64,000 nt of DNA from Guillardia theta CCMP2712 (GCF_000315625.1 NW_005434639.1:127670-191669); one strand, 5' to 3'. Positions 1-64,000 are shown, counted from the stretch's first letter. Numbers and translations are program-made. The notes: generated by a model from the letters alone, not told the origin.

Positions 1-3000
1 AGTAGAGAGCATTTTCCGGGGGGATGAAGAGAGTAGTTTGCATGCAGGATTCCGTGTGGAAAGAGCCTTCCATGAGAGTAAGAGTCAGTTGAGAGTCGGA
101 CCAACGCCCTCGCATTCTATCTTGTCCGTCAACCAAGACCCTGATCCCTTGCATGTCATCGGCAGTTACAAACGGCAAGACCAATTTGATTGTGTCAAAC
201 TCGTACAACGGGAACGAGAGCGAGAAAGCGAGCGTGAGCTGGATCGGAGAATGGTCATCAGCAGCATCCAGCGAGATTTCTGGTCTGACCATGAAATTTC
301 CGAGCGGCTCGATTCTCATTGGGACCGCAAACTTCTTCATGGCATCATCGTACACAAACATTGCCCCCTCCTTCCATTCAGCTGGAATCCCAGTCTTGGG
401 GAGCACGATCCCAACGCTGCTGGGGATCATCAGGTCAAAGTGCTTCAACCCGACCTGCATGTCCGATGCTGACTCAGCGCTCTCGTACACGAGACGCAGC
501 TCATTGTGCTCCTCGCAGGTGTCGGAGCAGGAGACGTACTCCAGCACAGTGCTGGGCATACAGGAAGGAAAGTCAATCGCCAACGTCTGGTTCGTCCAAC
601 TGTTGTTCATACAGACGCGGGTGCAGGAGCGTTCGTACACCCACGTCATGTTGAAGCTCGTGGTGGGCTGGGGGGTGCTGATAAGAAGGTTTTCAAGTGA
701 AGGCCCAACGAAGCCCGGCAGGATCAAGCTGATGACGTATCCTGACTTGGGCCGCCTGAGGCAGATCTTGATGAAGAGCTGAACCAGACGGTCAGCGTTG
801 AGCAGCTCAAACCGGAGGACGGGAACTTCGCACACAGGCGCCGAGAAGAGGCCGATGGGAACAGCCGCAAAGGGAACCTGTGTGGAGTTGACAAGTTGAT
901 GGTATGGTATCACCCCAGCAGTGGCGTCGAACGAGACGGTGAAAGCTGCATTGTTGAGAGCAAACCCAGTAGCAGGTAGCGTGATCCCAGATTCCGACGG
1001 GATCCAGACAGTTACATGTTGGTCTGGTAAGATCGTATTGTTGACTACAAGCCGCATCGTCCCCAGCGACTGGCTCCATGTAGCTTCAGAGAAGAGTCTG
1101 TCAGGTAGAGAAAACAAGGTCAGAGAGGAATTTGAGGGGCCGGACAAGCCTTGCAATCGCAGCAAGATTGTTTCTCCCTTGTTCATGTTCACATTCACAG
1201 AGAACACAAACTTGATCGTGGTTGTCTCTCCAGCAATCGGCGGCAAGAACAACAAACCAGCGAAGTTGACTGAGCCAATAAACGAATAATTCAGGATAGC
1301 TCGCTCGAGCACTGGGCCTTCTTTAGCATCTGTCCTGATGGTGAAAGTGTGATTTGAGCCAACTCCTGCCTTGGGTACGATGATCGAACAGTGGGAGGAG
1401 GAGACGAAAACCCAACTTGCGTTTTGTGATGCGAAGGAGGAATCATTAACAGGTGTGAAAGCAGCAGACACGTTGAACGAGAGAGTTTGCTCTTGAGGAT
1501 TCCAGCTAGCATGATAGAAAAGCTTGTGAGGATGAGACGTCACAGGAAACTCATGGCAAACAGCCCCGGAGAAACCAGCGAGCTTGACAACAACAACATC
1601 CCCTGGGCTCAAGTCCATGTTCGGGGTGAAGGAAACATTGATATCAGTAGGACTTCCATAGATACGAGGGGAAAACACGATGGAAACGTCGGAGAAGGAG
1701 CCAACAGGAGGGTTCTTGAGAATGGGAGTGAAAGGGATGTTTCCGTTCCTTGACATGACAGATATTGTCGAAACATTTTCATCCCTCCTCAAAGGCCGAT
1801 GGGGTAACATGATTCCATTTTGCCAAAGGAACTTGACGACGATTGGCTGCATCGAGGGGACGGAGGCGTTGAGCACTGTCAGAGCTATTCCTGTGCTGTT
1901 GCAGTTGGTGATCCAGTCAGGATGGAAGACGTCTTGCATCGCTGCTGCAACCTCGACCTGCTTCGAGTAGTCCTGGCGCTGGAAGCCGTGAAGGTAGATA
2001 AAAACTCTGTCTCCTCTGATCAGGTCGAAGGTGACTGTGAACTTTACCTCAACCTCCACCACCGCGTTCACGATTAGCGGAGAGTAGGAGAGAGAGGTGT
2101 CCATAACGATGCCAACGGATTGTGCGAACAGCAAGTCGGTGGAGGGGACGGGACCGTTGAACGCAGATGTCAAGATCTTGAAACTGGTCTGGTTGGGATA
2201 CATCCCACCGACGGGGATCTTGATCCGTGCGGATGGATCAACGTAAATCTTGACATTCGTATCGATCTGCACATCGGCTGAGAACACGAACGTCAACAGG
2301 CTTCGTGCTCTATCTACCGTCCCCACCAGCTCAGCTCTTGTACCATCTTCATACAGGCAGGCACCTGTAAAGTTCTGAGCTTCAAAGTCGATCAAGCTGT
2401 ACTCAAGAAACATCTCATCTGCTGCTCTAATGTGCATCCTCACTCCAATCATCATCAGCAGCGCTGCATACTGCCCAGCGACGGGCGGCAGGAGGAACAG
2501 TCTGGGGTAGACGAAGGAACCCACTGGGAAGACATTGGAGAAAGAAGTCTGCTCTGTTTGGACAGCGATGGAGATGTTGTATACGGTGCTAGAGTAGAGT
2601 CCTGACCTGTAGATAGGACCATCATCACTGGCTACTGCGATCCAGAAATTAGATTGGTTCTCCCGCACTCCTACCACCGGTATCACTAGGCCCAGAGTTC
2701 TTGGCAGCACAAAACTGATCAAGGTCTCTGCCGGGACGTCATCTTGGCTGTCGACGACAATCAGAGAGTCAGAGGCGTTCCATGACACGTTGAACGACAG
2801 GTTCCTGTCAGAGACGACTGGGAAGTCAACGAACGAGTCCCCTTGGAAGTTGGGCAAGGGAAACGTGATGGTCTCCCTCATCGCCAAATCCATGGAGAGG
2901 GCGAGAGAAACGAAGATGTCCGCTGCTTCCCCAGCCTTACCCAAATGCCGCATCAGGTGAGGGTCCAAAACCGTCTCGAACCTGATGGTGGGCCCGTACA

Positions 3001-6000
3001 AGATTGACCCGATAGTGTCGACGTGGATGGGGACAGGGGTCCGAGGGCCGTAGAATGCGTTGCTGGCGATGGTGAAATTCTGCTGTTTCCTGATTCCGTT
3101 CACTGGTAAACTGATCCCAGCGTCAGTACCAACAACAACCTCGATAACTTCGAGCGGGTCGATCCGCTGTGAGACGATCATTACCAGAGTCTTAGTTTGC
3201 AAGTTCCAGGTAGCGTTCTGAAGGTGAGGAGAGAACTGTAGGGTAATGTTCGTATTGCTGTCCCCTCCGAAGGAATCGAGCTGTAAGATGATAAGTTCTC
3301 CCTCCAAGATCTTCATGGTAGGGACGAAGCGAAGAAACAGGTTGGCGACAGCTCCTGCGTACCGAGGCTCGAAGGTGACGTAAGGGGCGCTGTCCAAACT
3401 CGTCGACCCGTAGATCATCCCGACAGGATTGGAGCGAGGGACTTGGATCGGGAGCACCGGGCCGTCAGTAGCATTGCAGGAGATGAAGAAACCCGACTGG
3501 TTCCACTCGAGCCCCACCTTGGGCGGTATGAGACCCTGGTTGGCGAGGACTTCAAGGGTCAAGCTCGAGTGCGCAGAGAGGTTGGCTCCTATCAGAAACT
3601 CCAACTTCTGCCCGACGGGATCCCACATCGCCGATGTCACCACCTCTGGAGGGAGACTGCCGACTCGGATGATCCTCTGTTCGGAGGACGAGGAGTAGAA
3701 ATTGGGGAGGTCGAGACGGATCGTTTCGCCATTGTTCAGCTCCATGGGCACTTGGAGGAACAGAGTCATCGTCGTTGGTAGGGTCGGGGTAAACCTGAGC
3801 TCAGGCGACCTCTCCTCCAATCGCAACCGGGCAAAGAAAGATCCAACGGGCCTGACTAGCGCGGGACTGACACTCGACACCGGGCCCTGGGCCGCGTTGA
3901 CCGTGATCAGGATTCCGTGCTGCTGGCGTCTGACGCCGGACTCCGGTAGGTACAGTCCAGAAGCGTTGAGGACCTTGATGAAAATCCGGGTACCTGCAAG
4001 GATGGTGGGCCCGGCACAGGAGTCAGCGACTGTGAAGGTAAGAGTGGACGTGGTCAAGTTCCAAGAAGATGTAGAGATCTTGGCAGCTGGCTCCACATGG
4101 AGGGAGAGAGGGGACAGCGAGGAGCCCTGAAAGCTAGGCAAGAGCACAGTGAATGTCTCGCCGGGGAACAAGGGCATGCTGAACTTGAGTTGCATTGATA
4201 TGTTGACATTCTCCCCTGCTATCGGAGGCTCGAAGTAGATCAGACTCTCCATCACAGCTCCGACGGGCTGTACGAAGTCTACGCGCGCGTTCCTCACCGC
4301 CCCGTCGCGGGAGTTGGTTGAGACCCTGAAGTCGAAGACGTTGAAAGGGACCCCGTAGGTCGGCAACCGAAATTTGGACGAGCGGTCGAGCTTGATGGAG
4401 CATCCTTGAAAGGAAGGGATCTTGGAGAACACGAGGAAAGAGATTTCGTTGACTGAAGGATCCCAGGAGGAGAAGTTCACCTCGCAACCCTCGCTCACCG
4501 TTTGGACTTCATCTCCCTCCCATGCAAACTCCGGCAGCGAGAAGACGACAGACTCGCCGGAGCCGATATCCATGCCGGGAGTGAAGGAGAAGATGACGTC
4601 GACAGACTGGTTGGCGACCGGAGAGGAAAAGTGCAGGGAGGAGTAGGCGAACCTTCCGATGGTAGAGACGAAATCGAAGTAGAAGGGGAAGGGCTTGATC
4701 GAGGAGGTATAGAAGGTAACAGTAAACTCATGCACGTTCCTGGTCCTGATCCCGGGGAAGGGGAGCAGGAGGGCAGCAGAGGAAGGGACTTCGACGTGGA
4801 AGAGTTGATCCTTCTTGACGACTTGGCCACACCTCACAGTGACATTGAACCGTTGGAGGACTGGAAGCCACTGAATGTTGACTAGGTCTTTCGAGGACCC
4901 TTGCAAGCCTGCGATCTGAGAGATAGCTTCGCCAGTGAAACCTGGCAAGTGGATCAAGAAGTACTCCTGCGCAACGATGTCAAACGCAGGGACGAAGGCG
5001 ATGATGATTGCTGCGGCTTCTCCTGCATTGATGGGGTTGAAAGTGATGGACGAGTTGGTAACGTTATTGACGTAAGGGCCACTGGCGGCATGCCGGAACG
5101 GCCGGCAGTCCTTGCACTGCACTTGAGACGTGTAGACAAGAGAGGTTGTGGTCGAGAAGTTCGAACGACCGACGATCCTCGTGTTGAAATTTGACAAGTA
5201 CAACTTCAGGAGGGTCCCGCGCGGAATGCTCTTCCTCCCAACCGTCAACAAGAGGGTCTCGTTGGAGGGGAACCAGAGGGCCTCGTGTACGGTCGAAGTG
5301 TAGGGCTCGAACAGGAAGGAGGAGGAGTTGTACATCGATAGGCTCTGTGCCGTCGCCCCCCCAATCTGATCCGGGCAAGAGGCCGATGGGTCCAATCTCT
5401 GGGCGTTCAAGGCAAACCCGTCTTTCAAGCACCTGCTCATGCCGATACCAGCCTGACATAACGATACCTTCTGTTGGGGGTTGTCCAGACTGAAGTAGGC
5501 GCTTTCTGACGGGCATGTCGGCGACAGAGCCGGAGCAGGGCAGTAGCTGGGGCAGAGGAAAGAGGCGCAATCTGCAATCTGCAAGTCTGCAATGTCTTCG
5601 ATGCCCCAGCCGCAGCCGAGGAGAGTACGTCTTGTGGTGACGTCACAGACTCTGTCGACAGAGAAGAGGCCGGCAGACAGACCAGCCAGCGGTACTTGAC
5701 ATGTATCGTTGCAGTCGGAGCGCTGGAGACCGTGCAGTTCGAGCTGTACGGAGGAGCGAGGCTCCAAGTCGACGTCAAATCTCATCACGATCTCGACCTC
5801 GGCGTCATACCCGACCCTGCTGTCGTTCAGTCGAACAGAGACTGGGTACTGCAAGGGGGCCAGCCCGCTGACAACGAGAGGGAAAGAGTCCAAGATCAGC
5901 CCTTGCTTCGCGTTGCAGGAGAGCTGGAAGGACGTCTCGTCCAGCTCGTCCCTCATCAGGTATACTCCAGCTGGGAGAGGTACTCGGACCGTGATTTTCT

Positions 6001-9000
6001 CTCGAGCGCCGACAGACTGATTGAACACAAAGAAGATTGGTAGGACGATACTCTGATTCCCACCTGTCCCATTCGCGCCAGGGTCAGAGGGTTGGGTGCA
6101 ATCGCCGAGGTCAACGCGGCCATGGCTGAAGGAGGTGAAGTTCTCAATGCAGCAAGAACTGCAGGACTCAAGGAAGGTGCCCCTTAGCGGGAGCTTCAAC
6201 CTAACGTGCTCGCCCTCGTCAATTCTCATCGTGACCACAAACGAAAGCTCAAGTGCGCTGATGTTGTTGTTGGAGCATCTCTCCGGATCGAAGGCCAGGT
6301 GGCTGTACTCAAAGGCTCCGATCCTCGGGAAGTGTTGTATGTACGTGATGGGCTGGATGGGGATGGAGCCGTCCACAGCGATGGCTGCCACTCGTGGTTG
6401 GCGGATGTCGATGCCTCCAAGGAGCCCCGTGCTCGGGAGCATGAGACCGGAGGAGGAAGGGACTATCACTGAGATGTTCTCGTGGATGGAAATTTCTCGT
6501 GAGACTGTCAAGGTTAACGATTCCAGGGCCTGGTTCCAAGAAGCCCTCTCGAACCTAGCTGGGTCGCTACTGGAGATTCCGACGCAGAGAGGTCCGGAGA
6601 CGCCAAGGAAGAGAGGGAGGTAGACGGTGATAGTGTCCTTGACCACCAGCATCATCTCCGGGACGAATGAGATAGAGATCTGAACGGGAGCGCCTGCCAT
6701 GGGAGGGTTGAAACTGAGGACGAACGAGTCCAAGAACGATCCGATCGACTGGCTACTAACGAAAGGAGTGAGAGGATGCTTACTCACCGGGCCGCTGGCA
6801 GCGTTGGTGCTGATGCCAAGGTTGGGTTGGTTGAGCCGAATGCCGTCGTCAGGGACGATGATCCCGAACGAACTAGAGATGTTGACATCTACTTTGAAGA
6901 AGGCTGAGATCTCCGAGTCCACTGTAAAGATTAGCTGCATCGTGCTGTTCTCCCAGCTGGCAGACGTGATGGACCCGTTGGTCGCCGTCACCGAGCCGTT
7001 GACGCTGGCGCCATAGAACTTGGGGAGCTTGAGAACGATGAGCTCTCCCGGCGCAAGGGGCATCACAGCCTGGAAGCTGAAGAACAGAGAAGAGACATCC
7101 GCAGCCTTGGCTGGATAGAAGCGAAGGACAGTAGTGTCCATGAACGATCCCAACAGCTGGTACTCGGTCACGAAGGTCGGGGGGATCCTCGGAACGGGCC
7201 CGTACTTTGCAGACGAGAAGATTGTGAAGTTTCGGCTGCCGGCCGTGACGCCATTGTGCGGCATGATGATGCTGGCGTTCGTCGTCAAGGTGAAGATGGT
7301 GTTCCCAGGAACATCGGCGAAGAACTCGAAGGTCAACATCTCCTCCGTCTTGTTCCAGCTTCCCACAGCTTGGGTCTCGGAGGAGGACACGATGACGGGG
7401 AATGGGCTCTCGAGCACCGAGAATCCAGGGAGGATGATGCTGATCTTGTCGCCGGGGATCAGTCTTGACGTCAGCTCCAGTCGCACCTGAACGTTGCCGG
7501 GGACCTGAGAGATGCTGTTGGGGGCCATGGGCTCGATATAGCTAAGGGCAGTGTTATTCTTGAAGTAACCGATGTACTGGATGTCACGGAAGAGGACTTG
7601 CTGTATCTCACCGGCGGACAGATTCCCCTGGAGGGAGATGAAAGATGCCTCGTTCACCCCCTTCTCCGGCAGCAAGATACCTGCTGCATCGGGGATTACG
7701 AAGGAGAAGCTGAAGTAAGGGTCCCGGTAGACTTTGTTCACAAACGTGATCTCCACTCCCTCCGTTGACTCGCTGACCGTGATCGAGCGCTCGCTGTCCT
7801 CGAGCGTCAGAGCCTGCAGGTCTGACCTGTTGCTGAGCCTAAAGTCTGGGAGTTTGATCAAGAGACTGTCGTCCACATAGGTCAACACGTCAAAGGCCAT
7901 CACGACTGACAACTCCGTCGGCATGCCTGCCCTGGGCTCCTTGGAGAACCGGATGGAAGAGACGTTGACCGAGCCGTACTGCTTCACTTCCTCTGACTTC
8001 TCTATTGGAATTGCTTGGCTGATCGGAACTTCTCCATCCGTCGCTGAAGACGCCAGGGTGTTGGCCTGGTCGTTGAGCCCGTTCCCCCTGCTCGAGATTG
8101 TGACCGACGATTGCGCGATGCGCAGGGTCAGTTTGGTGAATGCCGGGATATTCGTCTGGACGGGGAGGACGAAGGAATAGTCGGGGCTCGTCTGACTCCA
8201 GCTAGCCTCATTGATCCCTCCAGCTGGGCCTTCGAGGACCTGTACGTTGATGCTCGCCCCGTCATTTCCATCAAGCCCAGGAATACGGAGAACAATGTTG
8301 TCGTTGGGCTGCAGGTTCATGGTCGGAACAAAGGAGACGGTTATAGAGGGGGAGGAGCCGATTTGCGGGGGGTCAAAGCGGAGGGAAGTTTCATAGAAGA
8401 ACCCAACAGGAGTGTAGTCCGTGATGGGGGTGGGTGGGATAGGAGCTGCTGGAGCAGAGCAAGAAACGTTCATCTTACCCGCGGACAGAGTGATTCCCAG
8501 CTGAGGGAGAGTGATTCCGATCGACTCGGGCACGACGAGGGTAACTTCGACGTTCTGGTTGATGCACTGATTGGCAGTCAAATCCAGCATTTCGGACGAG
8601 GGGTCCCAGATGAAGGAGAAAGGGACGTTGGAAGTGGATACGAGATTTCCGCTCGTGGCTCCTCCGTTGAACCCACCAAGGTAGATATGGAACAACGACC
8701 CCGACTCGATCGGCATGGTTGGGGTCAATACTATGGTGATCTCGACTGAATGCCCAGCACGGAGGGGCGCAAACGTAAGTCCGAAGGTTGTAAAGGCACC
8801 AGCTGGGCTGATCTGCTTGATTCTGATGGGCAGGACCGGTCCAAGGACGGCGTCAGTGCTGATGTTGGGGAGATAGGTGTCCAAGACACTGCGGTCTATC
8901 AAGCTCCCGCAGGAGGAGGTGTGAGTCAGCAAGCCCCGAGCAGGGAGCTTGAAGTTCTTGATCTCCACCTTGAGGTTTGACTGGAAGACGTCCTTTGCCA

Positions 9001-15000: not shown

Positions 15001-18000
15001 GGAGTCTCAGAGTCATGATGTCTCCTGGCACGAGAAGCATCTTCATCCTGACAGACAGTTGGATCCCACAAGGGTTGTTGGACGACGGCAGTTGCGAGCT
15101 GCCGAAGAGAAAGAAGGAGAGATTAGACTCGACGATCCCTCCCGTCTTGTAGATCCCTGGGGACTTGTCGATAGGCAGGGGAACCACCTTTCCGTAGCTC
15201 GAGTTTGTGCCAAGGGTGACATTGCTGCTGTTCTCCGACAAACCCTCCAGAGATACCCGGAACAGCTCTGAACGGGAGATCTGGATGTGATAGTTGCACA
15301 ACTGATCGACAGAAAAGACGATCGGGTTGGACGAGAAGAGGATCTGAAGTTCGAACAGGAGGGGCCGCCATTGCCCGACCATCTGACAGGCTCCATCGCA
15401 GCAAGAGGAGGTCGCGGTGATGGTGACCGCAGTGCCCTGGTCTGCTTTGTCCAGCTGAAACCCAGGGAGGGTGAGAGAGAGAGAAGAGTCCTTGCTGAGG
15501 GCCATGGAAGAGAAGAAAGCGAGGTCGATGCTTGCGAGCTGTCCGATCTGCGGGGGGTCAAACCTGATGACGGAGTGGTGGAAAGATCCCACGTTGAGGA
15601 CTTGCATGCTGCTGGGGTTCGCTGGCCCGGCCTTTGCGTTTGTCTCGATCAGAAACTTGTCATAGTGGTCATTGAAGCCACACTTTGGCAGGCGGATGCC
15701 CGAGCTGGAGGGGATGCTGAAAGAGATAACCATGTCCTGCTGGACTACCTGAGCTGCCAAGACCTCGATCACGACCTGGGTTTCGGACCACTTGATCAGC
15801 GCTGTGGGGAAGTAAAGGGAGCCGTTCCCAGCTGTTGCAACCGTGACGTCTGGGTGGCTGGGGAACGCCTGGCTGCACTCGGAGATGACATTGCGATTGT
15901 ACGTCCACGTCATCTTGACCGACTCGTTCGTGGCGATCTCCTGATTCAACCTGAACCCGACGGAGAGTGTGACAAGCGACCCTGCAACCGGCGGGTCAAA
16001 CGAGATGGACTTGTAAGTGAAGACTCCGATGGGATTGCTGTATGCGATGGGGATCGGAGGAACCGGGCCGTAGATGGCATTACAGGAGATGCGCATGCGA
16101 GGATCGTTGGTGCTAATGCCGTAGGGGGGCAGGCGGATACCGAAAGAGGATGGGACAGTAAGAGACTGAGCTGAGAGCTCTGGGATGTCCTGGATGAAGA
16201 CAAGCTGGAGGACAGCATCCTTGTTGAACCAGTTGGCGTAGAGGTTGGCGTTGTCGTTGATAGGGTCAAACTTGTAGATGTTGCCGTTGGCAGTGAAGCC
16301 TGTCAGGGTCAGGTTGATGATCTCCCCTGCCCTGATCGTCATCTGCGGCTCGAAGGAGAACTGGATGGTCGCTGGGGACTCGAGCGCAGTGTAGGTGACG
16401 TGGAGGAAGGGGAGCTTCTTCACAGGCTCGTAGAAGGAGCCGACGGCCTGCGAGGTAGGGATGATCGCGCCCTTGATGGGACCGTCGATGGCATTGGTAA
16501 GGATCTTAAGGTCCTGCTGGTTGGCACCCAAACCTTTCAGGCGAAGTCTGATTTCAGCTGCCTCCGGGATGACTATCTGAATGGTCTCGTTAGGCCCAGG
16601 GATGACGACCGCTGCCGTCATGAGCAGCCTTGACTCGTTGACGTACCACCTGCCCACCTTGAACCAGCCCTCAGGAGTCGAGGAGACATTGAATGTGTCC
16701 CGTCCCCCCGTGAAGCCGGGGAGGATCAGTCCGACGTGCTCGTCAACAAGGATTCTCATCTCAGGCCTGAACTCGAGGATGAGAGAAGAAACCTCTCCTG
16801 CCGTTGGGTTGCCATAAGACAACTTGGGGCTGTTGAGGAAAGAGCCAACACCATCGGACTCCGGGAACGCAACCTGGACAGCGTAGGCCACAGGAGACTG
16901 AACTCCGATCTTGAGGGAGGGCTGGTTCCTGCTCACACCTTCCAACGGAAGCCTGATGCCTGCGTCGGAGTCGACGAAGATTGCGACGCTGGTGTTTGCG
17001 TCAAAGGCAGTGTTCAGTAGCACGAGCCTCAGCTGACCGAGCAGGGGGTTCCAGCTAGCGAGGCCAAACCCAGGGACCCACACGTTGTGCGTTATCTCCC
17101 CGAGGAAACCTGGCAGGCTGAGGACGAGGGCATCGCCGCTCTTTAGAGGGAGGGAGTAGGAGAAGAGGATCTGAAGGCCAGTCTCAGGAGATGACGTGGA
17201 CTCGTAGCGCAGATAGACAGGTTCGATCCTTCCCACTCCCAGCACGTTGTACACCCTTGTGGGCAGGACTGGACCATCCTGAGCGTTGGTAGCGACGGTG
17301 ATGAAGTCAACGATGTAGACACCTCCTGGAGGAATTACCACATTCACCTCCTGCTCCACTACAGCAAGGCATCTGCTGGAGGGTGGTATGTCTGACAAGA
17401 CCGTGAAGTTGAGAAACGGAGGGTCCCAAAGGACTGACGAGGGGACGAGCGATTTTGAGTTGTCCAGGGAGCAAGACAGGTTGAAGTAAGCGACCTTGGA
17501 GCTCTTGCCGAGAAACTTCGGAATATGGACGAAAATGGTCTCCTCGAATTGAATAGACATGGCGATTGAGAAATTGAAAATGATCCTGGAGGGCTGGCCG
17601 GGGACTCCGTCGACGAACGAGACCTGAGTCTCGTTGTTGAAGGAGCCAACGGGCGGGAGCTCGTCAAAGACGTGACGGTAGCAGTCGTCCAAGAGGATGA
17701 AGATGCCTCGATCGATGGACCTGAAGCCATAGCGGGACAGCACAAAACCGTAAGACGTCGAGATCGCGAACTCCGGCTGGAAGCTTCCAACACCGTAAGG
17801 AAAGACCTCGAGCACCTTGGACGGCTCAGTCCACCTGATTCTCGTCCAGTAGACTCCGGCTAAGAAGAACTCAGTCACGTTCTGAGTCGCCTGCTGCAAG
17901 GAGATCTCCGGGAGGTGGATGCGTAGAATGTGCTTCTGTGAGTCTGAGAAGGTGACTCTGAACCTCAGCTCCACGGGCTCGCCCGCCCGCGCGTTGTAAT

Positions 18001-21000
18001 GCACAAGGGATGCGAACACTAGCGGGTAGGACTGGGAGAAGGAGCAGAAAAATCGAACGTTTTGAAAGGGTTGATCTTGGAAACGGGGTGCAGAAGAGAT
18101 TGACGGAGAATAGTTCTGGTTTACCTTGCTCAGAACAAGACCAGTGATCTTGAAATGTACAAGCGTCGACGCTAGAATGTCTTGGTCGATACGGAGCACG
18201 ACTCTTCCCAAAGACACGTTGAAAGACTTCACGCTGAGCAGAGGCGAGGAGTCCTGTAGTGCAGAGGACGTACCTACGAAGAGATTGGGCATGCTAACAG
18301 AGATTTCCTCCCCCGTCGACAAGTTTGACAAGCATGCAAACTGCACCTCCACCATCCCTGACAACGAGTATGCGTCCAATCTCGTGCTAGTGAATCCTTG
18401 CCCCCCTCCCACCTCCAGGAGCCTCCGCTTCCCAGCTGTCCCTGCCATCTGAATCTCATCTGAGTTGAACAGGATTCCCTTTGACCTCTCCTCCACCCAC
18501 GTTGCCCCCTTCTCCCTCATCTGCGAGCTCTGCGCAGGTACTGCAGGGCTCCATATCACACTCTCCCTCTCGATCGCAACCAATCCTTCAGAGCTTCTCA
18601 TCATCGCCTCCAGCCGCTTGTCCGCCTCCTCCAGACCTCCTCCTGGCAGCTTCAGGATCCCATCGAGACTTTCTGAAACGCTCCTCCCGCATCCTGCGGC
18701 TCGCTCGCACACCAGCTCCAGCACTCCCCTCACCTCATCCCACGTCCCATTCATCCCCTCCGTCATGATTCCCTGCACAGCAGCGGTTCCCATCTCCGAC
18801 AAGGTCAACGAGGAGGAGGAAGTGAAGTTGGGCAGGAACACTGAGACCTTGTCACCAATTGAGATGTTGATGCTGCTCTCCAGCTGCAAGTCCAGCTTGC
18901 AGGCCGCCAGAGGGGTCCTGGGATGAAAGTCGAGGGTGAAGTTGCGGAATTTCCCGACAGCCTGGACGAACTTGAAAGGCTGCCAGTCCACCATCGAGGT
19001 GGCCAGTTGAGCTGAGATCTGAATTCCATCCCAGTTCTTCTCGACTCCTTCGGTCGGCAAAGTCAGCCCGGTCCCAGCTGGGACTTCGACCTTGACAAGC
19101 TCTCCTCTCTGAAGCGATTGCTCCAACTTCAGTAGCAGCGTCCTGCTGCTCTGAAGCCACGTCATCGCAAGGGAAGTGTTGGAGACAGCAGCGAAGGCCT
19201 GTTGGGGCTGCGAGAAGGAGGGCATCCTGATAGATATCGTCTCATTCGCAGCCATGGGCATCTGCGGCACAAATGTGATGATGACGTCAGCAGACGAGTC
19301 AACCAAGTTGTAATTATTGAAGAACATTCTCGTGCTCTCGAAGGATCCGTCCGTCGCGGTCGAGACCAGAGCAGTCGGGATCAGGTACCCAGCGACTGCT
19401 ATCATCTCGATGGTGGGCGAAGTGAGAGCTGAGAGACCGTCAGGTGGGAAGAGAATGCCCAGCTGAGACTGAAACTGAACGACCTGCTTCACTCCCGGAT
19501 CGATCTTTTTCCCGACAGACACTGTAAGTGACAACGAGTTCTGACCCGCAGTGACTTGGTAGATGTCCAGGTCAAAGATACCTACTGGAGTGAAGAAGCC
19601 CGGGAGGTTGAGGACTATGCGATCCTTGGGCGCCAGCGACATGCTGGCCGTGAAAGAGATCTCAAAGGCGGCTGGGCTGCCAGCTACCACCGTTGACGTG
19701 AACACGATCTGCGGCTGAGTCTGCAGCGATCCGATAGCGCGAGAGTTGATTGGAAGTTGGATGGGGTAGCCGTGAGTTGGATCGAGGGAGAGAGAGAAAG
19801 AATTAGCTGCAAGGCCGGGGAAGGGAACGTACAGCTGTTGCGAAGAGGAGATGTACAGATAGCGGAAAGAGCTCGCCGTGCTGATGGTGACAGTCAGAAG
19901 GACTTCGCTGGTAAGAGGATTCCAGCTCGACCCCAGGACATCGATGTTCTGACCGACGACAGTGAAGGCGGAGATACTCGAGGCCCTCCGCAGACCAGAC
20001 AACTTGAGTCGCCATTGCTCGACCAAGTTTCTGGGTCGGGAAGTCGCAACGTCATGGAGCGAAATATTGATGGACAGATCGCGTTCGATGGCAGGAGGAT
20101 CGAAGGAGGCAACGATGGAGTCAAAGAGAGGAACGGCGGGAGAAATCTTGATCGACTGGGGGGCCACCGGACCCGCCTCAAACGATCCGAAAAGCCTCAA
20201 AGTTGCCTGGTTTGCCATCAGGCCATTGACAGGCACGTGAAGCCCGAAAGATTCTGGAATGACGATGGTAATGTTGGAAGCCTCAATGATATCCTCGTTG
20301 AAAGAGATGGAGAATTCATGGCTGCCTTGAACCCAGGTTGCAGACAAATAAACGTAGTTGATAGTATTTACAACGATCTGAATCATAGACCTTCTCTCGA
20401 AATTGTTCTCGAGGGAATACTCAGCAAAGAAATCCGGCAGCTGCATTGACAACACATCTCCCTTAACCAACTTCATCCCATTGCTGAAGACCAGCTCAAG
20501 CTGGACTATTGAACCAGCTGAAGGTGACTCTGGTATATACGCCAACCTGGCGTAGGTAGAAGTAGCAAGTAGAGCCCCGACTGGCTCGACATACCAAAGA
20601 GGGGTAGAATACACCGGCCCTGCCTTGGCGTTACAGGAGATGAAAAATGTTTGCTGGTTCAATGAGATGGCTTTCTCCGGCAGAGTGAGGCCAGAGGTGG
20701 AGGAGATGAAGGCATGAACTGATCGATTTGCCTCCAGCACTTTCCCGCAGTTCACCACAAACACCAGGCGCTGATCGGGGTAGGTCGCCGACCATGCAGC
20801 ATAGAACCGCGGATCGCTCACGCTCCCCATGTCGAACACATCGGACTGGGGGATGATACCCTCAGGGCCCTTGAAGCCCGGCAGATAGAACTCGATCAGC
20901 TCTCCCTCCTGAATGCTCATGAGAGGAGTGAACTGAAAATGAATGTCCACTCGCTCCCCGGCTGTCGGGTTGTCGTACGACATGCTGGTGTAGGAAAAAG

Positions 21001-22381
21001 CGCCGACTGGCGTCAAGATATCAAGAGATCTTGAGACAACAGGGCCGTAGATAGCGTCCGTCGTCAGCTGGACTCCCTGGAAGTCCGATGGAAGGCCTGT
21101 TGTAGGGAGCGCAAAAGAGTTTTGAGAGCTCACAAAAATGTCACTGCGCAAGCCTGCCAAAACAAGGTACTTAGCAGTGAACACGAGAATGTTAGAATCT
21201 CGATGCCACTTGGCCTGATCAAACTGATCGTTCTGAGTTGTGATGCTTTGATTCTGGTCAGCTACTCGTCTTGAGAATCCTGGCAGATGAAGAGCAATGT
21301 GTTCTCCAGGAAGAATATCGCGATTGTGTATGAATTTCAAGGAAATAGAGACGATATCCCCGGCAAGAATAACATCTGGAGATTGGCCAGCGAACTGAAA
21401 CCTGTACTCCTCAAAGGATCCGATGGCAGGCGCAGCAGCGACAGTTGGAAAGACTGGACCTTGAGAGGCATTCGTTTCCACCAAGACCCTAGGATCATGC
21501 AACAATATTCCATCCTGACCTATCGCTATTCCCGCCGACTGTGGAACAAAGATCCTGCAATGCAGCAGCGCCGGCAGGAGAAAACTTGTAGAGGCAGGCA
21601 TATAAACGCTAAGAACGCTGCTCATACTCCAACTTGAGCGAAGTATAGTACTGACAGTCAGTAGACCTTGCGCGTTCGAACAATTCAATTCAACGAGGGA
21701 AAACTGAGATGTGTAACATGGATAACCTTTTTGACATGTGAAACTAGGAAATGAGACCCTGATCATATCATTCGCAATCATATTCATCTGGGCAATGAAC
21801 GAGACGTCTATCCCAACCATTCTTCCTGCAACCCTCTCCGTAAAATCAACCTTGAGGGTGTCCGTGAACGAACCAATCTGCAGCAGAGGTGTGTTCACAG
21901 GAACCGAGGGCCCGCCATTCTGCGCGTTTGTGTAGTAAGTACCGAAGGAGTTGATTCGAACTCCTTCCTTGGGAGCACTGATGCCCGATGTCGCTGGGAT
22001 CAGCACGCTGTAATCGCGACCATTGGCCGTTATTTGAGTGCATGTGAGGACAAGAGTGCTCTCTGCCTCTACCCAGTCCGCTTCTGCGAACTCTGCTGTG
22101 CCAAGCTGGATGGTCCCCGTGGAGTTGCGGAAGAAGTTAGGCAGCGTGACCCAGATCTTGTCTCCAGGGAGCAGACCGCCGCAACCAAAGCACATCTTGA
22201 ACTTCAAGGTGAAGTTCAATGGCTGCGCTGAATACGCTCGTGTATAATCGACGGTAAGGTATTGAATCGCTACTTGATCTCTGAGGCCGAAGAAAGAAAC
22301 TTCTGACGATTTCATCCCTACTCCACTTGAGGTGAACGCTTGAAATAGGACAAGGATGCCACTCAGAAGCCATCTCTTCAT
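1..22381 (-). CDS. Giant secreted/surface repeat protein, >=7,460 aa, 3'-partial (runs off left edge), apparently one exon
   Basis: ATG at 22381 reads MKRWLLSGILVLFQAFTSSGVG (signal-peptide-like), then ...GDKIWVTLPNF...W...GISAPKEGV...GSFTD. The same frame still reads repeat-like sequence at the left edge (FPLYEFDTIKLVLPF...GRWSDSQLTLTL). No minus-strand ORF listed in the track between 1 and 22421 is in this frame, as expected if it has no stop. Spot translations at about 0-1, 3.7-5.6, 12.4-13, 18.3-18.8 and 21.7-22.4 kb were all open. Example unit at about 12980-12582: VGVFNNPVLRFSPAYAGRFTTLTMSFVAGMGMLYGETVTLHLPGF...W...LTLPIDGV...ARSGPVIPT. Confidence 0.93.
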   Translation of the reverse strand, partial: MKRWLLSGILVLFQAFTSSGVGMKSSEVSFFGLRDQVAIQYLTVDYTRAYSAQPLNFTLKFKMCFGCGGLLPGDKIWVTLPNFFRNSTGTIQLGTAEFAEADWVEAESTLVLTCTQITANGRDYSVLIPATSGISAPKEGVRINSFGTYYTNAQNGGPSVPVNTPLLQIGSFTDTLKVDFTERVAGRMVGIDVSFIAQMNMIANDMIRVSFPSFTCQKGYPCYTSQFSLVELNCSNAQGLLTVSTILRSSWSMSSVLSVYMPASTSFLLPALLHCRIFVPQSAGIAIGQDGILLHDPRVLVETNASQGPVFPTVAAAPAIGSFEEYRFQFAGQSPDVILAGDIVSISLKFIHNRDILPGEHIALHLPGFSRRVADQNQSITTQNDQFDQAKWHRDSNILVFTAKYLVLAGLRSDIFVSSQNSFALPTTGLPSDFQGVQLTTDAIYGPVVSRSLDILTPVGAFSYTSMSYDNPTAGERVDIHFQFTPLMSIQEGELIEFYLPGFKGPEGIIPQSDVFDMGSVSDPRFYAAWSATYPDQRLVFVVNCGKVLEANRSVHAFISSTSGLTLPEKAISLNQQTFFISCNAKAGPVYSTPLWYVEPVGALLATSTYARLAYIPESPSAGSIVQLELVFSNGMKLVKGDVLSMQLPDFFAEYSLENNFERRSMIQIVVNTINYVYLSATWVQGSHEFSISFNEDIIEASNITIVIPESFGLHVPVNGLMANQATLRLFGSFEAGPVAPQSIKISPAVPLFDSIVASFDPPAIERDLSINISLHDVATSRPRNLVEQWRLKLSGLRRASSISAFTVVGQNIDVLGSSWNPLTSEVLLTVTISTASSFRYLYISSSQQLYVPFPGLAANSFSLSLDPTHGYPIQLPINSRAIGSLQTQPQIVFTSTVVAGSPAAFEISFTASMSLAPKDRIVLNLPGFFTPVGIFDLDIYQVTAGQNSLSLTVSVGKKIDPGVKQVVQFQSQLGILFPPDGLSALTSPTIEMIAVAGYLIPTALVSTATDGSFESTRMFFNNYNLVDSSADVIITFVPQMPMAANETISIRMPSFSQPQQAFAAVSNTSLAMTWLQSSRTLLLKLEQSLQRGELVKVEVPAGTGLTLPTEGVEKNWDGIQISAQLATSMVDWQPFKFVQAVGKFRNFTLDFHPRTPLAACKLDLQLESSINISIGDKVSVFLPNFTSSSSLTLSEMGTAAVQGIMTEGMNGTWDEVRGVLELVCERAAGCGRSVSESLDGILKLPGGGLEEADKRLEAMMRSSEGLVAIERESVIWSPAVPAQSSQMREKGATWVEERSKGILFNSDEIQMAGTAGKRRLLEVGGGQGFTSTRLDAYSLSGMVEVQFACLSNLSTGEEISVSMPNLFVGTSSALQDSSPLLSVKSFNVSLGRVVLRIDQDILASTLVHFKITGLVLSKVNQNYSPSISSAPRFQDQPFQNVRFFCSFSQSYPLVFASLVHYNARAGEPVELRFRVTFSDSQKHILRIHLPEISLQQATQNVTEFFLAGVYWTRIRWTEPSKVLEVFPYGVGSFQPEFAISTSYGFVLSRYGFRSIDRGIFILLDDCYRHVFDELPPVGSFNNETQVSFVDGVPGQPSRIIFNFSIAMSIQFEETIFVHIPKFLGKSSKVAYFNLSCSLDNSKSLVPSSVLWDPPFLNFTVLSDIPPSSRCLAVVEQEVNVVIPPGGVYIVDFITVATNAQDGPVLPTRVYNVLGVGRIEPVYLRYESTSSPETGLQILFSYSLPLKSGDALVLSLPGFLGEITHNVWVPGFGLASWNPLLGQLRLVLLNTAFDANTSVAIFVDSDAGIRLPLEGVSRNQPSLKIGVQSPVAYAVQVAFPESDGVGSFLNSPKLSYGNPTAGEVSSLILEFRPEMRILVDEHVGLILPGFTGGRDTFNVSSTPEGWFKVGRWYVNESRLLMTAAVVIPGPNETIQIVIPEAAEIRLRLKGLGANQQDLKILTNAIDGPIKGAIIPTSQAVGSFYEPVKKLPFLHVTYTALESPATIQFSFEPQMTIRAGEIINLTLTGFTANGNIYKFDPINDNANLYANWFNKDAVLQLVFIQDIPELSAQSLTVPSSFGIRLPPYGISTNDPRMRISCNAIYGPVPPIPIAYSNPIGVFTYKSISFDPPVAGSLVTLSVGFRLNQEIATNESVKMTWTYNRNVISECSQAFPSHPDVTVATAGNGSLYFPTALIKWSETQVVIEVLAAQVVQQDMVISFSIPSSSGIRLPKCGFNDHYDKFLIETNAKAGPANPSSMQVLNVGSFHHSVIRFDPPQIGQLASIDLAFFSSMALSKDSSLSLTLPGFQLDKADQGTAVTITATSSCCDGACQMVGQWRPLLFELQILFSSNPIVFSVDQLCNYHIQISRSELFRVSLEGLSENSSNVTLGTNSSYGKVVPLPIDKSPGIYKTGGIVESNLSFFLFGSSQLPSSNNPCGIQLSVRMKMLLVPGDIMTLRLPDFKNTTGFQPQRTCSTSKVRSLYWLEAESSLVLQVISEIEARELFIYSSCVEEQLILPEQGVRPNSVNITLSSNASAGPFPPLSLQQVTPIGALLNSSISFSPPYAAPVSRYASSPCCNDYTASCCTNYQEACNFRVNVTVKFIKYMSITPADKLLVQLCGFQRVVNCPAPPTNETSMFDLSWDAVQSQLTLIPKYTLYSTFMDFVVPSSFGLVLPLDGLYGRECLRIGTDAADGPVPLTSFPYKQRVGAFWNMSISFITSSPLATIGLTIRMRNKMPLVAKDVIVLYLPTFSGPNISCASAVGENGTLISSAWFRENSSVAFELVDSFPVDSTITIFLPSTAMIGIPKDGLSASSSIFLSTDAFFGPVLKTKIHYVPVIGWQGIFNHVSLRFGDQPSTHYPVPLLLSFSYNASLHYGDEIVLGLTRFSFPQSLVDTSTFTTEWSVRSDCSKGCGWQTVMYPIVGSALWDAANQTLTLKLVGDIEAGTEMSILIPSTAGMNLPQTGVGRQHNISIACKAQAGSTRSPFRVVDFYPVGGIDNPNITFDPLQADVYSRVLVSLDILMELNVYPDSTFVDKLLVTLTGFQGDDRCESFNATAVFPFSEACWNLTTHTLSLSVGSFIPKRTSLQFALGSNFVKLPVDGLIENYQALKISVSALDGNVLPTAFERSPAVGVFNNPVLRFSPAYAGRFTTLTMSFVAGMGMLYGETVTLHLPGFSAKPSSTTISTLSQRFAFVSWQAETSSLVFTVEYPFSKGEQIREILSSADLTLPIDGVYADSKLIRISSNARSGPVIPTPFVEGNFDPVGYFKFSRLHVAPPSTSLSVSLTISFISIVDLQPNAVVQLDLPGFTVSGAVSHHNETGPTVTSIQWNSQISRLSIVLGQVVYHDALTSIKFSAAQLIKIPAGGLAANEPSLKISCVQSVGAILPTSIMYSPGIGSNGKAVDVQLFFDQKGPIAGMISPMKIQFVANVSLFPSDTILLTLPGFSSASVNVSVLVVTDWYGGQSQETVASWMSAQSKLELNVPLELPASSLVTLSLLQGLILPQDGLPKDKIGLKLQASAVAGDIPVTDIGRWPAIGSVVSSLSFDPPRAGVSSSIIFHFTPSMTIYKDETLSLKLPGFRRSSQAQLDISPPSVFVNGSWSERDMEVRWRAAEDIAMYSALTLTIGVDQGIITPVDGIMTNDSAFTVSINASEGQVFSAPVSGVQGIGSLEQVSAFFFPKDRSMYLEISFAIKSRKVIFKDDSLILLLPFLGRASGNQQISLAGEDSASFQALWGTSSCGNGSQADQSCPCKYEEVKGFDQKFLTLSSLGNLPLGREVKLTITADSALMVDQVSMVWATSNNFLVGCSRYGDLEPINNLNLTGILSTSLNFGDKVSLSPVNFSISFESDISFDVNDTLRLHLPDFYSEGSCQDPRTLTISISGQSMKHALSACWANSTSELLMTFESHVRLLGNSSVFISSSVGMVIPQAGIRRLSCYTLQAFTSRYGNFSSCITHVVPIGNFLRSEVGFYGSVSSSSLLSGINSIGVVVQPTMTILRGESITITFYDFKNVSERADGVLPSNGTDWTVIWDENRGKMRLVANETISAFSVVVLTINVSVLIKVPIEGVRDGDTRFNINSDAQDGPVLSAPLTKIQAIGSFYNADPNKNVNIVFTPPVAYNSRSQVKTSLQASFTPTMKIAPGELVELFLPGFQATPSQFTVTSTNLRFIQASWQGSLSILSLTAQSSVVIGESVVVTVPQSVGFKIPEEGIARGKIYIKCNALDGPVPFSPVQYTPIGSFAGTSWLDYGNKRAGELSDLFFRFRASMKIFQDDFVRLSLPSFTLLPGQISVVDPQHYITRASWSTRLQILEFTVVQEIPANVSISLSVYHSESGLVLPVYGTNLNNGDIKISCTSSDGPILPTPVWQSPAVGTFLSSTTFQVIPGQVGVANVISFSFTPHLPIQQGDHVVLNLPLFERSEVYQDQIHSSEIVTVPEGFASGASWDLATNNMVLTLAKDVFQSNLKVEIKNFKLPARGLLTHTSSCGSLIDRSVLDTYLPNISTDAVLGPVLPIRIKQISPAGAFTTFGLTFAPLRAGHSVEITIVLTPTMPIESGSLFHIYLGGFNGGATSGNLVSTSNVPFSFIWDPSSEMLDLTANQCINQNVEVTLVVPESIGITLPQLGITLSAGKMNVSCSAPAAPIPPTPITDYTPVGFFYETSLRFDPPQIGSSPSITVSFVPTMNLQPNDNIVLRIPGLDGNDGASINVQVLEGPAGGINEASWSQTSPDYSFVLPVQTNIPAFTKLTLRIAQSSVTISSRGNGLNDQANTLASSATDGEVPISQAIPIEKSEEVKQYGSVNVSSIRFSKEPRAGMPTELSVVMAFDVLTYVDDSLLIKLPDFRLSNRSDLQALTLEDSERSITVSESTEGVEITFVNKVYRDPYFSFSFVIPDAAGILLPEKGVNEASFISLQGNLSAGEIQQVLFRDIQYIGYFKNNTALSYIEPMAPNSISQVPGNVQVRLELTSRLIPGDKISIILPGFSVLESPFPVIVSSSETQAVGSWNKTEEMLTFEFFADVPGNTIFTLTTNASIIMPHNGVTAGSRNFTIFSSAKYGPVPRIPPTFVTEYQLLGSFMDTTVLRFYPAKAADVSSLFFSFQAVMPLAPGELIVLKLPKFYGASVNGSVTATNGSITSASWENSTMQLIFTVDSEISAFFKVDVNISSSFGIIVPDDGIRLNQPNLGISTNAASGPVSKHPLTPFVSSQSIGSFLDSFVLSFNPPMAGAPVQISISFVPEMMLVVKDTITVYLPLFLGVSGPLCVGISSSDPARFERASWNQALESLTLTVSREISIHENISVIVPSSSGLMLPSTGLLGGIDIRQPRVAAIAVDGSIPIQPITYIQHFPRIGAFEYSHLAFDPERCSNNNISALELSFVVTMRIDEGEHVRLKLPLRGTFLESCSSCCIENFTSFSHGRVDLGDCTQPSDPGANGTGGNQSIVLPIFFVFNQSVGAREKITVRVPLPAGVYLMRDELDETSFQLSCNAKQGLILDSFPLVVSGLAPLQYPVSVRLNDSRVGYDAEVEIVMRFDVDLEPRSSVQLELHGLQRSDCNDTCQVPLAGLSAGLFSVDRVCDVTTRRTLLGCGWGIEDIADLQIADCASFLCPSYCPAPALSPTCPSESAYFSLDNPQQKVSLCQAGIGMSRCLKDGFALNAQRLDPSASCPDQIGGATAQSLSMYNSSSFLFEPYTSTVHEALWFPSNETLLLTVGRKSIPRGTLLKLYLSNFNTRIVGRSNFSTTTSLVYTSQVQCKDCRPFRHAASGPYVNNVTNSSITFNPINAGEAAAIIIAFVPAFDIVAQEYFLIHLPGFTGEAISQIAGLQGSSKDLVNIQWLPVLQRFNVTVRCGQVVKKDQLFHVEVPSSAALLLPFPGIRTRNVHEFTVTFYTSSIKPFPFYFDFVSTIGRFAYSSLHFSSPVANQSVDVIFSFTPGMDIGSGESVVFSLPEFAWEGDEVQTVSEGCEVNFSSWDPSVNEISFLVFSKIPSFQGCSIKLDRSSKFRLPTYGVPFNVFDFRVSTNSRDGAVRNARVDFVQPVGAVMESLIYFEPPIAGENVNISMQLKFSMPLFPGETFTVLLPSFQGSSLSPLSLHVEPAAKISTSSWNLTTSTLTFTVADSCAGPTILAGTRIFIKVLNASGLYLPESGVRRQQHGILITVNAAQGPVSSVSPALVRPVGSFFARLRLEERSPELRFTPTLPTTMTLFLQVPMELNNGETIRLDLPNFYSSSSEQRIIRVGSLPPEVVTSAMWDPVGQKLEFLIGANLSAHSSLTLEVLANQGLIPPKVGLEWNQSGFFISCNATDGPVLPIQVPRSNPVGMIYGSTSLDSAPYVTFEPRYAGAVANLFLRFVPTMKILEGELIILQLDSFGGDSNTNITLQFSPHLQNATWNLQTKTLVMIVSQRIDPLEVIEVVVGTDAGISLPVNGIRKQQNFTIASNAFYGPRTPVPIHVDTIGSILYGPTIRFETVLDPHLMRHLGKAGEAADIFVSLALSMDLAMRETITFPLPNFQGDSFVDFPVVSDRNLSFNVSWNASDSLIVVDSQDDVPAETLISFVLPRTLGLVIPVVGVRENQSNFWIAVASDDGPIYRSGLYSSTVYNISIAVQTEQTSFSNVFPVGSFVYPRLFLLPPVAGQYAALLMMIGVRMHIRAADEMFLEYSLIDFEAQNFTGACLYEDGTRAELVGTVDRARSLLTFVFSADVQIDTNVKIYVDPSARIKIPVGGMYPNQTSFKILTSAFNGPVPSTDLLFAQSVGIVMDTSLSYSPLIVNAVVEVEVKFTVTFDLIRGDRVFIYLHGFQRQDYSKQVEVAAAMQDVFHPDWITNCNSTGIALTVLNASVPSMQPIVVKFLWQNGIMLPHRPLRRDENVSTISVMSRNGNIPFTPILKNPPVGSFSDVSIVFSPRIYGSPTDINVSFTPNMDLSPGDVVVVKLAGFSGAVCHEFPVTSHPHKLFYHASWNPQEQTLSFNVSAAFTPVNDSSFASQNASWVFVSSSHCSIIVPKAGVGSNHTFTIRTDAKEGPVLERAILNYSFIGSVNFAGLLFLPPIAGETTTIKFVFSVNVNMNKGETILLRLQGLSGPSNSSLTLFSLPDRLFSEATWSQSLGTMRLVVNNTILPDQHVTVWIPSESGITLPATGFALNNAAFTVSFDATAGVIPYHQLVNSTQVPFAAVPIGLFSAPVCEVPVLRFELLNADRLVQLFIKICLRRPKSGYVISLILPGFVGPSLENLLISTPQPTTSFNMTWVYERSCTRVCMNNSWTNQTLAIDFPSCMPSTVLEYVSCSDTCEEHNELRLVYESAESASDMQVGLKHFDLMIPSSVGIVLPKTGIPAEWKEGAMFVYDDAMKKFAVPMRIEPLGNFMVRPEISLDAADDHSPIQLTLAFSLSFPLYEFDTIKLVLPFVTADDMQGIRVLVDGQDRMRGRWSDSQLTLTLMEGSFHTESCMQTTLFIPPENALY

Positions 22382-22756
22382 GATTATAGTGATCCTCTGC
22401 TATCCTCGACCCTTCATGCACTCCCTGCTCGCCTCACTAGCTCAATCATCGTCTCAAACTTACAGATCGCTCGTCTCATCAACATATCTTCTCCTCTCCG
22501 TCCTCCTCTTCCTGCGCTTCTTCCCTTTGCCTGCCTCCCCCACCATGGCATCTCCGCCATGGTCACTGAAAACGAAGGGACGTCCACCGGGTACCCCCAC
22601 CCACCCCCTCAAATCTTTCACCCCATAATATCCTCTTGGGTTCAGTATTGCCTGATACCACCGGTGGTTTGACTTGAGCTTTGGACCCCCTGTAAATTGT
22701 CAAAGGTTGTCATGGAGAAAATGAGTAGGAGCTCAAATGCGGATCTGGCAGTACCG

Positions 22757-23085
22757 AGGGAGGAAGGGAGGGGAAAGGGGAGGGGAAAGGGGAGGGGAGG
22801 AGAGGAGAGGAGGAGAAGGGAGGAAGGGAGGGAGGGAGGAGGAGTGGCGAGGAGGAGGGAAGGGAGGGTNNNNNNNNNNNNNNNNNNNNNNNNNNNNNNN
22901 NNNNNNNNNNNNNNNNNNNNNNNNNNNNNNNNNNNNNNNNNNNNNNNNNNNNNNNNNNNNNNNNNNNNNAGGGAACGAAGGGAGGAGAGGGGAGGGCGGG
23001 AGGGGAGGGGAGGGCGGGAGGAGAGGGAGGAAGGAGAGGGGAGGGAGGGGGGAGGGAAGGGTAAGAAGGAAGGGAGAGGGAAAGG
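22757..23085. repeat. Purine-rich (GGA/GGGA) low-complexity tract containing a 100-N assembly gap (22870-22969)
   Basis: Sequence is almost entirely G/A on both sides of the run of n. Confidence 0.9.
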
Positions 23086-56132: not shown

Positions 56133-63890
<7,758 letters not shown>

Positions 63891-63915
63891 AGTAAGAAGA
63901 GATCTCATGCCTTTG

Positions 63916-63960
63916 TTGTCTTGTCTTGTCTTGTCTTGTCTTGTCTTGTCTTGTCTTGTC
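63916..63960. repeat. (TTGTC)9 microsatellite
   Basis: Direct reading of the sequence. Confidence 0.92.
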
Positions 63961-64000
63961 TTGACCGTCTTGACTGTCTTGACTGTTACGACTAGTTCAT

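Follow-up and report, generated by a model that had tools for sequence, protein, structure and literature searches.

The 64,000-nt stretch of Guillardia theta CCMP2712 DNA analyzed here (GCF_000315625.1 NW_005434639.1:127670–191669; hereafter the window) carries on its minus strand a giant open reading frame (ORF) that starts at position 22381 and is still open at the window edge, so that its C-terminus falls beyond the window. Minus-strand frame 0 was free of stops between the window edge and the in-frame stop at 22400–22402, a span of 22,402 nt, and translation of 22399–2 yielded 7,466 codons with 0 stops and 0 X. The first Met lies six codons downstream of this stop, which bounds the ORF at its 5′ end, and leaves a partial coding sequence of 7,460 codons from the ATG (2–22381). 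Since the remaining five frames of the same DNA contained 138–491 stops, the open frame is not a product of chance. Two runs of N (22870–22969 and 61410–62401) are both located outside it. The preliminary description of this DNA had claimed a stop-free minus-strand ORF of at least 7,460 aa that was missing from the ORF track, and both statements were correct: the track omits ORFs running off an end of the source, and only four short plus-strand ORFs were listed in the gene region. The part of the protein inside the window has a mass of 810 kDa and an acidic isoelectric point of 5.1, and the whole protein is thus at least 810 kDa. The locus is predicted to be a gene of at least 22.4 kb that lacks both introns and an annotation and whose secreted product exceeds 810 kDa.

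The N-terminal 20 residues (aa 1–20, MKRWLLSGILVLFQAFTSSG; 22322–22381, minus strand) begin with a basic n-region, continue with a core of 13 hydrophobic residues, and close with a c-region of small residues. By inspection, this segment resembles an endoplasmic reticulum (ER) signal peptide, in line with the signal-peptide-like start proposed previously. N-x-S/T sequons, earlier described as frequent, were found 127 times, against 56 ± 6.8 expected from 1,000 shuffles (shuffle maximum, 80), which corresponds to a twofold enrichment; the reversed motif occurred 72 times. No convincing transmembrane helix was found within the repeat array that makes up most of the protein.

This array comprises 54 predicted β-sandwich units (aa 59–7460; 2–22207, minus strand), the last of which is cut by the window edge. 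A hidden Markov model (HMM) iterated from one unit detected 54 copies of a core of about 103 aa, which recur with a median period of 139 aa; 35 copies are full length, and 27 units were cleanly bounded, with a median length of 139 aa. When a 300-aa piece was used as a BLASTP query, 32 matches with 20–29% identity were obtained within the giant protein. The unit consensus retains VGSF, AG, LPGF, one Trp, G..LP..G, and a terminal GPV. These numbers agree with the initial estimate of about 50 diverged repeats of about 140 aa, and the GPV motifs noted at that time near 3881, 3458, 3045, 2616, and 2151 coincide with HMM unit ends at 3878, 3455, 3041, 2612, and 2147, respectively. Pairwise identity between units averaged 21% (maximum, 38.5%), and Tandem Repeats Finder detected no DNA-level tandem repeats in the gene, as expected from the strong divergence of the units in DNA that had been described. 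Unit identity was flat (0.20–0.22) for offsets of 1–12 units; a super-repeat was therefore rejected, and this independence from unit distance also argues against recent duplication. The segments of about 35 aa between the cores were rich in Pro (10% versus 5.6% in the cores).

Three short non-repeat inserts break the array on the minus strand: aa 1269–1343 (18353–18577), aa 3747–3846 (10844–11143), which may instead be a degenerate repeat, and aa 5578–5675 (5357–5650), which contains 9 Cys and has a GC content at third codon positions (GC3) of 0.67. Because the GC3 values of the inserts (0.58–0.71) are coding-like and one insert forms a 9-Cys module, hidden in-frame introns at these sites are unlikely.

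Structure prediction with AlphaFold2 was performed for a single unit (aa 5064–5199; 6785–7192, minus strand) using an alignment of the 27 internal units, and for three consecutive units (aa 6030–6447; 3041–4294, minus strand) using an alignment of 74 three-unit segments from the giant protein and its relatives. The single unit was modeled as an eight-stranded β-sandwich with a predicted local distance difference test score (pLDDT) of 93.3 and a predicted template modeling score (pTM) of 0.82, which places it in the immunoglobulin (Ig)-like/β-sandwich fold class (two sheets, 7–9 strands, about 100–140 aa). The three-unit model reached a pLDDT of 95.2 and a pTM of 0.88, and suggests that the domain junctions are confidently packed and probably stiff. 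Based on 54 units of typical Ig-like domain size, the array would be about 0.2 μm long. Tandem β-sandwich (Ig-like) modules had been proposed from the sequence, and the confidence of both models, together with the Ig-like and adhesin-type sandwiches returned by the structure searches, supports this proposal.

In these searches, the one-unit model had no match in the PDB at E ≤ 1e-3 with Foldseek, and the best template modeling scores (TM-scores), about 0.5, were obtained for CBM3 modules and integrin legs. An exhaustive VIA-align search with the same model gave a top Z of 7.6, a level common for generic arrangements, and its matches included YcnI, an uncharacterized Ig-like protein from Nocardia, mu-homology domains, domains of Srr and MSCRAMM adhesins, and YweA. 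For the three-unit model, local matches with E values of 1e-9 to 1e-6 were found to streptococcal antigen I/II C123, PrgB Ig-like domains, integrin alpha legs, and MSCRAMMs, with global TM-scores of at most 0.30. The closest shapes in the ESM Atlas, with TM-scores of 0.70–0.75 at the top, were unnamed eukaryotic proteins labeled as oomycete or ciliate, together with DUF2808 proteins of bacteria, the latter with TM-scores of 0.66–0.70. A language-model search of the Atlas returned unnamed clusters alone, and recognition was below the reliable level. DUF2808 and BslA/YweA were set aside as homologues, as they were matched by fold-level scores alone (TM-score, 0.66–0.70, and Z, 6.6, respectively). 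In the models, the unit thus appears as an ordinary adhesin-type Ig-like sandwich without an identifiable solved relative.

The sequence searches were consistent with this. Neither half of the giant protein matched a Pfam family at E ≤ 1, and the 27 single units, searched at E ≤ 10, gave nothing recurrent, with one unit matching Big_8 (E = 7e-4). No gathering-score match was obtained to Big_1–13, fn3, I-set, Cadherin, TIG/IPT, PKD, DUF11, CARDB, Cna_B, or SpaA. A unit profile compared with all PDB sequences at E ≤ 10 found only 2z1p, a marginal collagen-adhesin match (E = 0.027). The absence of matches for the whole protein and the scattered single hits of the units conform to the view that the repeat cannot be assigned to a named family.

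To identify relatives, a 133-position unit profile built from 27 units of the giant protein (profile A1) was compared with 1.84 billion cluster representatives, of which 1,029 matched at E ≤ 1e-3, 578 at E ≤ 1e-10, and 244 at E ≤ 1e-30. Many of the matched proteins (numbered with the prefix P below) are themselves giant, with 10–51 tandem units like those of the protein described here; P0006, for example, has 7,659 aa and 51 units. Most matches came from metagenome contigs without a taxon, and every taxon-labeled match was a protist: Hanusia phi (P0008, 6,378 aa; P0172, 3,928 aa), Cryptomonas curvata (P0176, UniRef A0A7S0LYZ3), Baffinella frigidus (P0173), and the chrysophyte Chlorochromonas danica (P0131, 7,569 aa). 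Hanusia, Cryptomonas, and Baffinella being cryptophytes, these relatives point to a cryptophyte source of the DNA and fit the guess made in the preliminary description. Literature searches for the A1 family or for giant cryptophyte surface proteins found no paper. Judging from the profile matches, A1 appears to be a large, uncatalogued protist domain family for which databases hold no model.

The structural matches bear on the possibility that the gene came from bacteria, either as contamination or through horizontal transfer of a fibrillar adhesin gene. Most of the nearest solved folds are domains of bacterial adhesins, and the shape search also reaches the bacterial DUF2808 proteins. However, this likeness is of a generic kind (Z ≤ 7.6), no bacterial Ig family in Pfam was matched at the gathering score, and all named members of the family are protists. 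Furthermore, the scaffold holds eukaryotic genes with which the giant ORF shares its codon-position GC: the values of the ORF (0.52/0.44/0.70) follow the same pattern as those of its neighbors, and the match of its GC3 of 0.70 to the 0.67–0.76 of the genes for WD40, GT41/tetratricopeptide repeat (TPR), and S6PP proteins argues for a nuclear eukaryotic gene. We therefore regard a bacterial origin as highly improbable.

None of the top 150 A1 matches was more than 35% identical to the giant protein. The unit order was nevertheless collinear with that of P0001 (identity of 27.8% on the best diagonal versus 22.1% overall, 27 units) and that of P0030 (30.5% versus 21.2%). Because the order is collinear, the array would be older than the divergence of this gene from P0001 and P0030, with each position conserved in its own right. 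Word-index searches in three length ranges detected no self match of the giant gene, which is not represented in the public protein collections searched.

Assembly and expression of the gene were examined using public sequencing runs. Two contigs of a 2011 DNA run (X1) spanned 16900–22760 with zero differences from the window. About 6% of a raw RNA-seq run labeled with the same species was read and compared with a stretch of 5,901 nt; only five reads were recovered, all in one orientation, which would fit minus-strand RNA in a dUTP (deoxyuridine triphosphate)-type library. Another run, X8, which is only guessed to be an RNA run, contributed a single contig on the gene, of 154 nt, identical to the window (19821–19974). 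No splice joints over the gene were seen in these data (five reads and one 154-nt contig). The RNA data are weak evidence of low expression and say nothing firm on introns. The entries under which EukProt and UniRef list the members from Hanusia and Cryptomonas presumably derive from transcriptome assemblies, and if so, giant mRNAs of the A1 family are made.

The very low RNA support and the lack of a gene model in public protein sets would be expected if the gene were silent or decaying, an unexpressed relic array, or if it were an assembly artefact. These explanations are very improbable, for a 22.4-kb frame could not have stayed stop-free without selection while its sister frames accumulated stops in the numbers given above. 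In addition, the units keep their conserved core motifs and fold confidently in the models, and their order has remained collinear with that of P0001. The exact match of the DNA-run contigs and the absence of any DNA-level repeat able to cause mis-assembly argue against an artefact.

The relatives provided clues to the architecture of the complete proteins. At the end of complete members (P0172, P0176, and the P0155/159/161 group), a stretch rich in Ser and Thr precedes a single hydrophobic helix, which is followed by basic residues and a tail of 150–330 aa; these members are thus predicted to have type I membrane topology. The repeat array of P0011 contains an embedded LCCL domain as well as an Endonuclease I domain (PF04231, E = 3.6e-18), P0017 and P0054 contain F5/8 type C and YHYH domains, respectively, and cadherin-like and GOLD domains were also found in relatives. 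P0002 shows, by eye, an EGF-like Cys pattern near its end. All these accessory domains are of extracellular types, and the architecture of P0011 suggests that some members of the A1 family display an extracellular nuclease on a stalk. An endonuclease-I-like motif was also seen by eye at the start of P0009. The signal-like peptide, the sequon excess, and the type I relatives with extracellular-type domains together favor the earlier claim of a secreted protein. Giant paralogues also occur in tandem: P0006 and P0010 are located on one 46.8-kb contig, and P0011 (L002:1–8538) and P0004 share the contig L002.

Some relatives formed a distinct subfamily (P0017, P0023, P0035, P0054, P0057, P0065, P0087, P0094, P0099, P0100, and P0131 from Chlorochromonas danica), whose members have about 6,300–8,000 aa and 12–24 units. 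The C-terminal region of 2,000–3,200 aa that follows their units is a large uncharacterized module almost without Pfam matches, apart from weak F5/8-C or YHYH hits. Another metagenome contig (ENA k141_515901, L001:1–19982) contained 40 A1-type units in frame +0 (aa 246–6438), running through all three called genes, and this frame is interrupted by stops only at 430, 1504–1795, and 16396. Prokaryote-style calling has probably split a single larger eukaryotic gene, with in-phase introns or a read-through, into these three called genes.

Anchored relatives are also relevant to two other fates that a secreted, Ig-like rod could have. Cryptophytes and chrysophytes both bear tubular flagellar hairs, and the A1 family occurs in cryptophytes and in one chrysophyte. 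The giant protein could accordingly be a building block of an extracellular appendage, such as these hairs or the scales or fibrils of the periplast, that is released and polymerized after secretion; the evidence for secretion and for an Ig-like rod would apply equally to such a protein. There is also an algal precedent, as the Chlamydomonas mastigoneme is built from MST1, a glycoprotein described as having Ig-like domains (PMC10602792, PMC11015965). However, the unit profile found no solved chain other than the marginal collagen-adhesin match, no mastigoneme entry was present within the top 50 structural matches of Foldseek and VIA-align, and the transmembrane anchors and cytoplasmic tails of several complete relatives fit anchored proteins better than released polymers. 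An appendage subunit is therefore an unlikely, if reasonable, interpretation.

The second is that the protein is stored as content or scaffold of a secretory organelle until discharge. Cryptophytes have ejectisomes, and mucocyst-like vesicles are another conceivable site; a signal peptide and sequons would be equally expected for such cargo. However, the known ejectisome ribbon proteins are small, and relatives with transmembrane anchors, cytoplasmic tails, and enzyme or lectin-type domains point to a role at the surface. Organelle cargo is, in our judgment, improbable.

Taken together, the results make it probable that the locus is a genuine nuclear gene of a cryptophyte-type alga, whose secreted and N-glycosylated product forms a long surface rod of 54 or more Ig-like modules. 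This surface-rod interpretation is supported by the uninterrupted frame with its array of repeats, by the modeled fold and the confident packing between units, by the excess of sequons, and by the existence of a large protist family. The protein would enter the secretory pathway and become heavily N-glycosylated, and its modules, at least 54 Ig-like β-sandwiches, would form a long, fairly stiff rod. By analogy with the complete relatives, the C-terminus may comprise a stalk rich in Ser and Thr, a single transmembrane helix, and a tail in the cytoplasm; anchored in this way, the rod would project roughly 0.2 μm from the plasma membrane or periplast surface. There it might act as a fiber or spacer of the surface coat, in adhesion, in cell–cell or particle contact, or in the display of binding modules.

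Several points weigh against this interpretation. Expression is barely supported by the five reads from about 6% of one run and the 154-nt contig, and searches of public protein collections did not find the gene. The start and the single-exon structure are predictions from the open frame, and the signal peptide was judged by eye. The C-terminus lies beyond the window, so that a membrane anchor is predicted from the relatives, and no ligand-binding module was identified in the part inside the window.

The rest of the window contained, among others, the following ORFs on the minus strand. Directly upstream of the giant gene, a single ORF of 1,549 aa (24738–29387) encodes many WD40 repeats forming multiple β-propellers, and its N-terminal region of about 880 aa was unexplained by the best-stretch matches listed. 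An ORF at 31782–33479 contains TPR repeats and a GT41 (O-GlcNAc transferase-type) domain (E = 1.6e-37) and is probably one exon of an OGT/SPY-like gene. The ORF at 45455–47938 (827 aa) had no Pfam match at E ≤ 0.01, and that at 53293–54306 matched sucrose-6F-phosphate phosphohydrolase (S6PP, E = 1.1e-33) and HAD hydrolase families. The GC content of the region 60001–64000, around the 992-N gap at 61410–62401, was 0.34–0.39, compared with about 0.55 elsewhere. Several long overlapping ORFs on both strands of this region are spurious, because they run through Ns.

Little is known of the molecules that build the cell covering of cryptophytes and the surface coats of other protists, and the gene described here provides a well-defined candidate surface component of at least 810 kDa. 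Its repeat family, with about 1,000 cluster representatives and no Pfam model, spans at least the cryptophytes and a chrysophyte. That the searched collections lack this gene shows again how standard annotation misses giant genes on single exons and how gene calling on metagenomes breaks such genes up. The confident domain model and profile A1 can be used to draw up a Pfam entry, to make antibodies or tags, and to search surface proteomes. The A1 domain might define a large unnamed protist-wide family of giant surface fibers, which in cryptophytes and chrysophytes would form the long-sought protein backbone of a visible surface structure (periplast fibrils or scales, or tubular flagellar hairs), with the adjacent tandem paralogues marking a dedicated surface-structure locus. 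This wider proposal is speculative and we consider it doubtful. If it were true, A1 members would be largely invisible in annotations because of the enormous single exons on which they sit. Since the tandem Ig-like surface rod is familiar, the finding is of value for cataloguing and annotation more than as a new principle.

Among known systems, the closest in overall design are the bacterial fibrillar adhesins and periscope proteins, giant secreted proteins that consist mostly of tandem Ig-like sandwiches of about 100–140 aa serving as a rod or spacer. The ice-binding adhesin of Marinomonas primoryensis, for example, contains about 120 tandem Ig-like repeats of 104 residues (PMC4083281; PMC9704523). 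As in these adhesins, the tandem stalk array forms the bulk of the giant protein (54 units, aa 59–7460), and its best structural matches are the adhesin Ig variants AgI/II C123, PrgB, and MSCRAMM N2/N3. Unlike them, the giant gene appears to be eukaryotic and nuclear, with a putative ER-type signal peptide and N-glycosylation sequons, and its relatives are predicted to anchor by a type I transmembrane helix instead of LPXTG or type 1 secretion retention. An origin in bacteria, with an anchor or export signal of bacterial type (LPXTG sortase motif, type 1 secretion signal, or outer-membrane retention module), is at odds with the eukaryotic neighbors, the native codon-position GC, the protist relatives, and the type I transmembrane helices at the ends of relatives; the C-terminus of the giant protein itself lies beyond the window. 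The near-identical DNA repeats that permit length variation in adhesins have no counterpart here (no DNA repeat; maximum unit identity, 38.5%), and since the repeats are only about 21% identical, length variation by recombination is unlikely.

The integrin alpha legs (thigh, calf-1, and calf-2), which are part of the ectodomain of a type I membrane protein, were also among the top matches of both the one-unit and three-unit models, with sandwiches of similar size and topology. They differ from the giant protein in that the TM-scores were 0.2–0.5, no sequence similarity was found, and the giant protein has no propeller head and 54 units versus three. Chlamydomonas MST1 is an extracellular glycoprotein composed largely of Ig-like domains that forms a fiber on the flagellar surface (PMC10602792, PMC11015965), and the giant protein would resemble it as an Ig-rich extracellular glycoprotein of an alga that forms a fiber on the cell surface. 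Unlike MST1, to which there was no detectable sequence match and no structural match in the top 50, it showed no hydroxyproline-rich helix region in the part inside the window, and its domains are much larger in size and number. Thus, although by sequence it is a member of no adhesin or MST1 family, the giant protein is predicted to be of a familiar kind, the tandem Ig-like surface rod.

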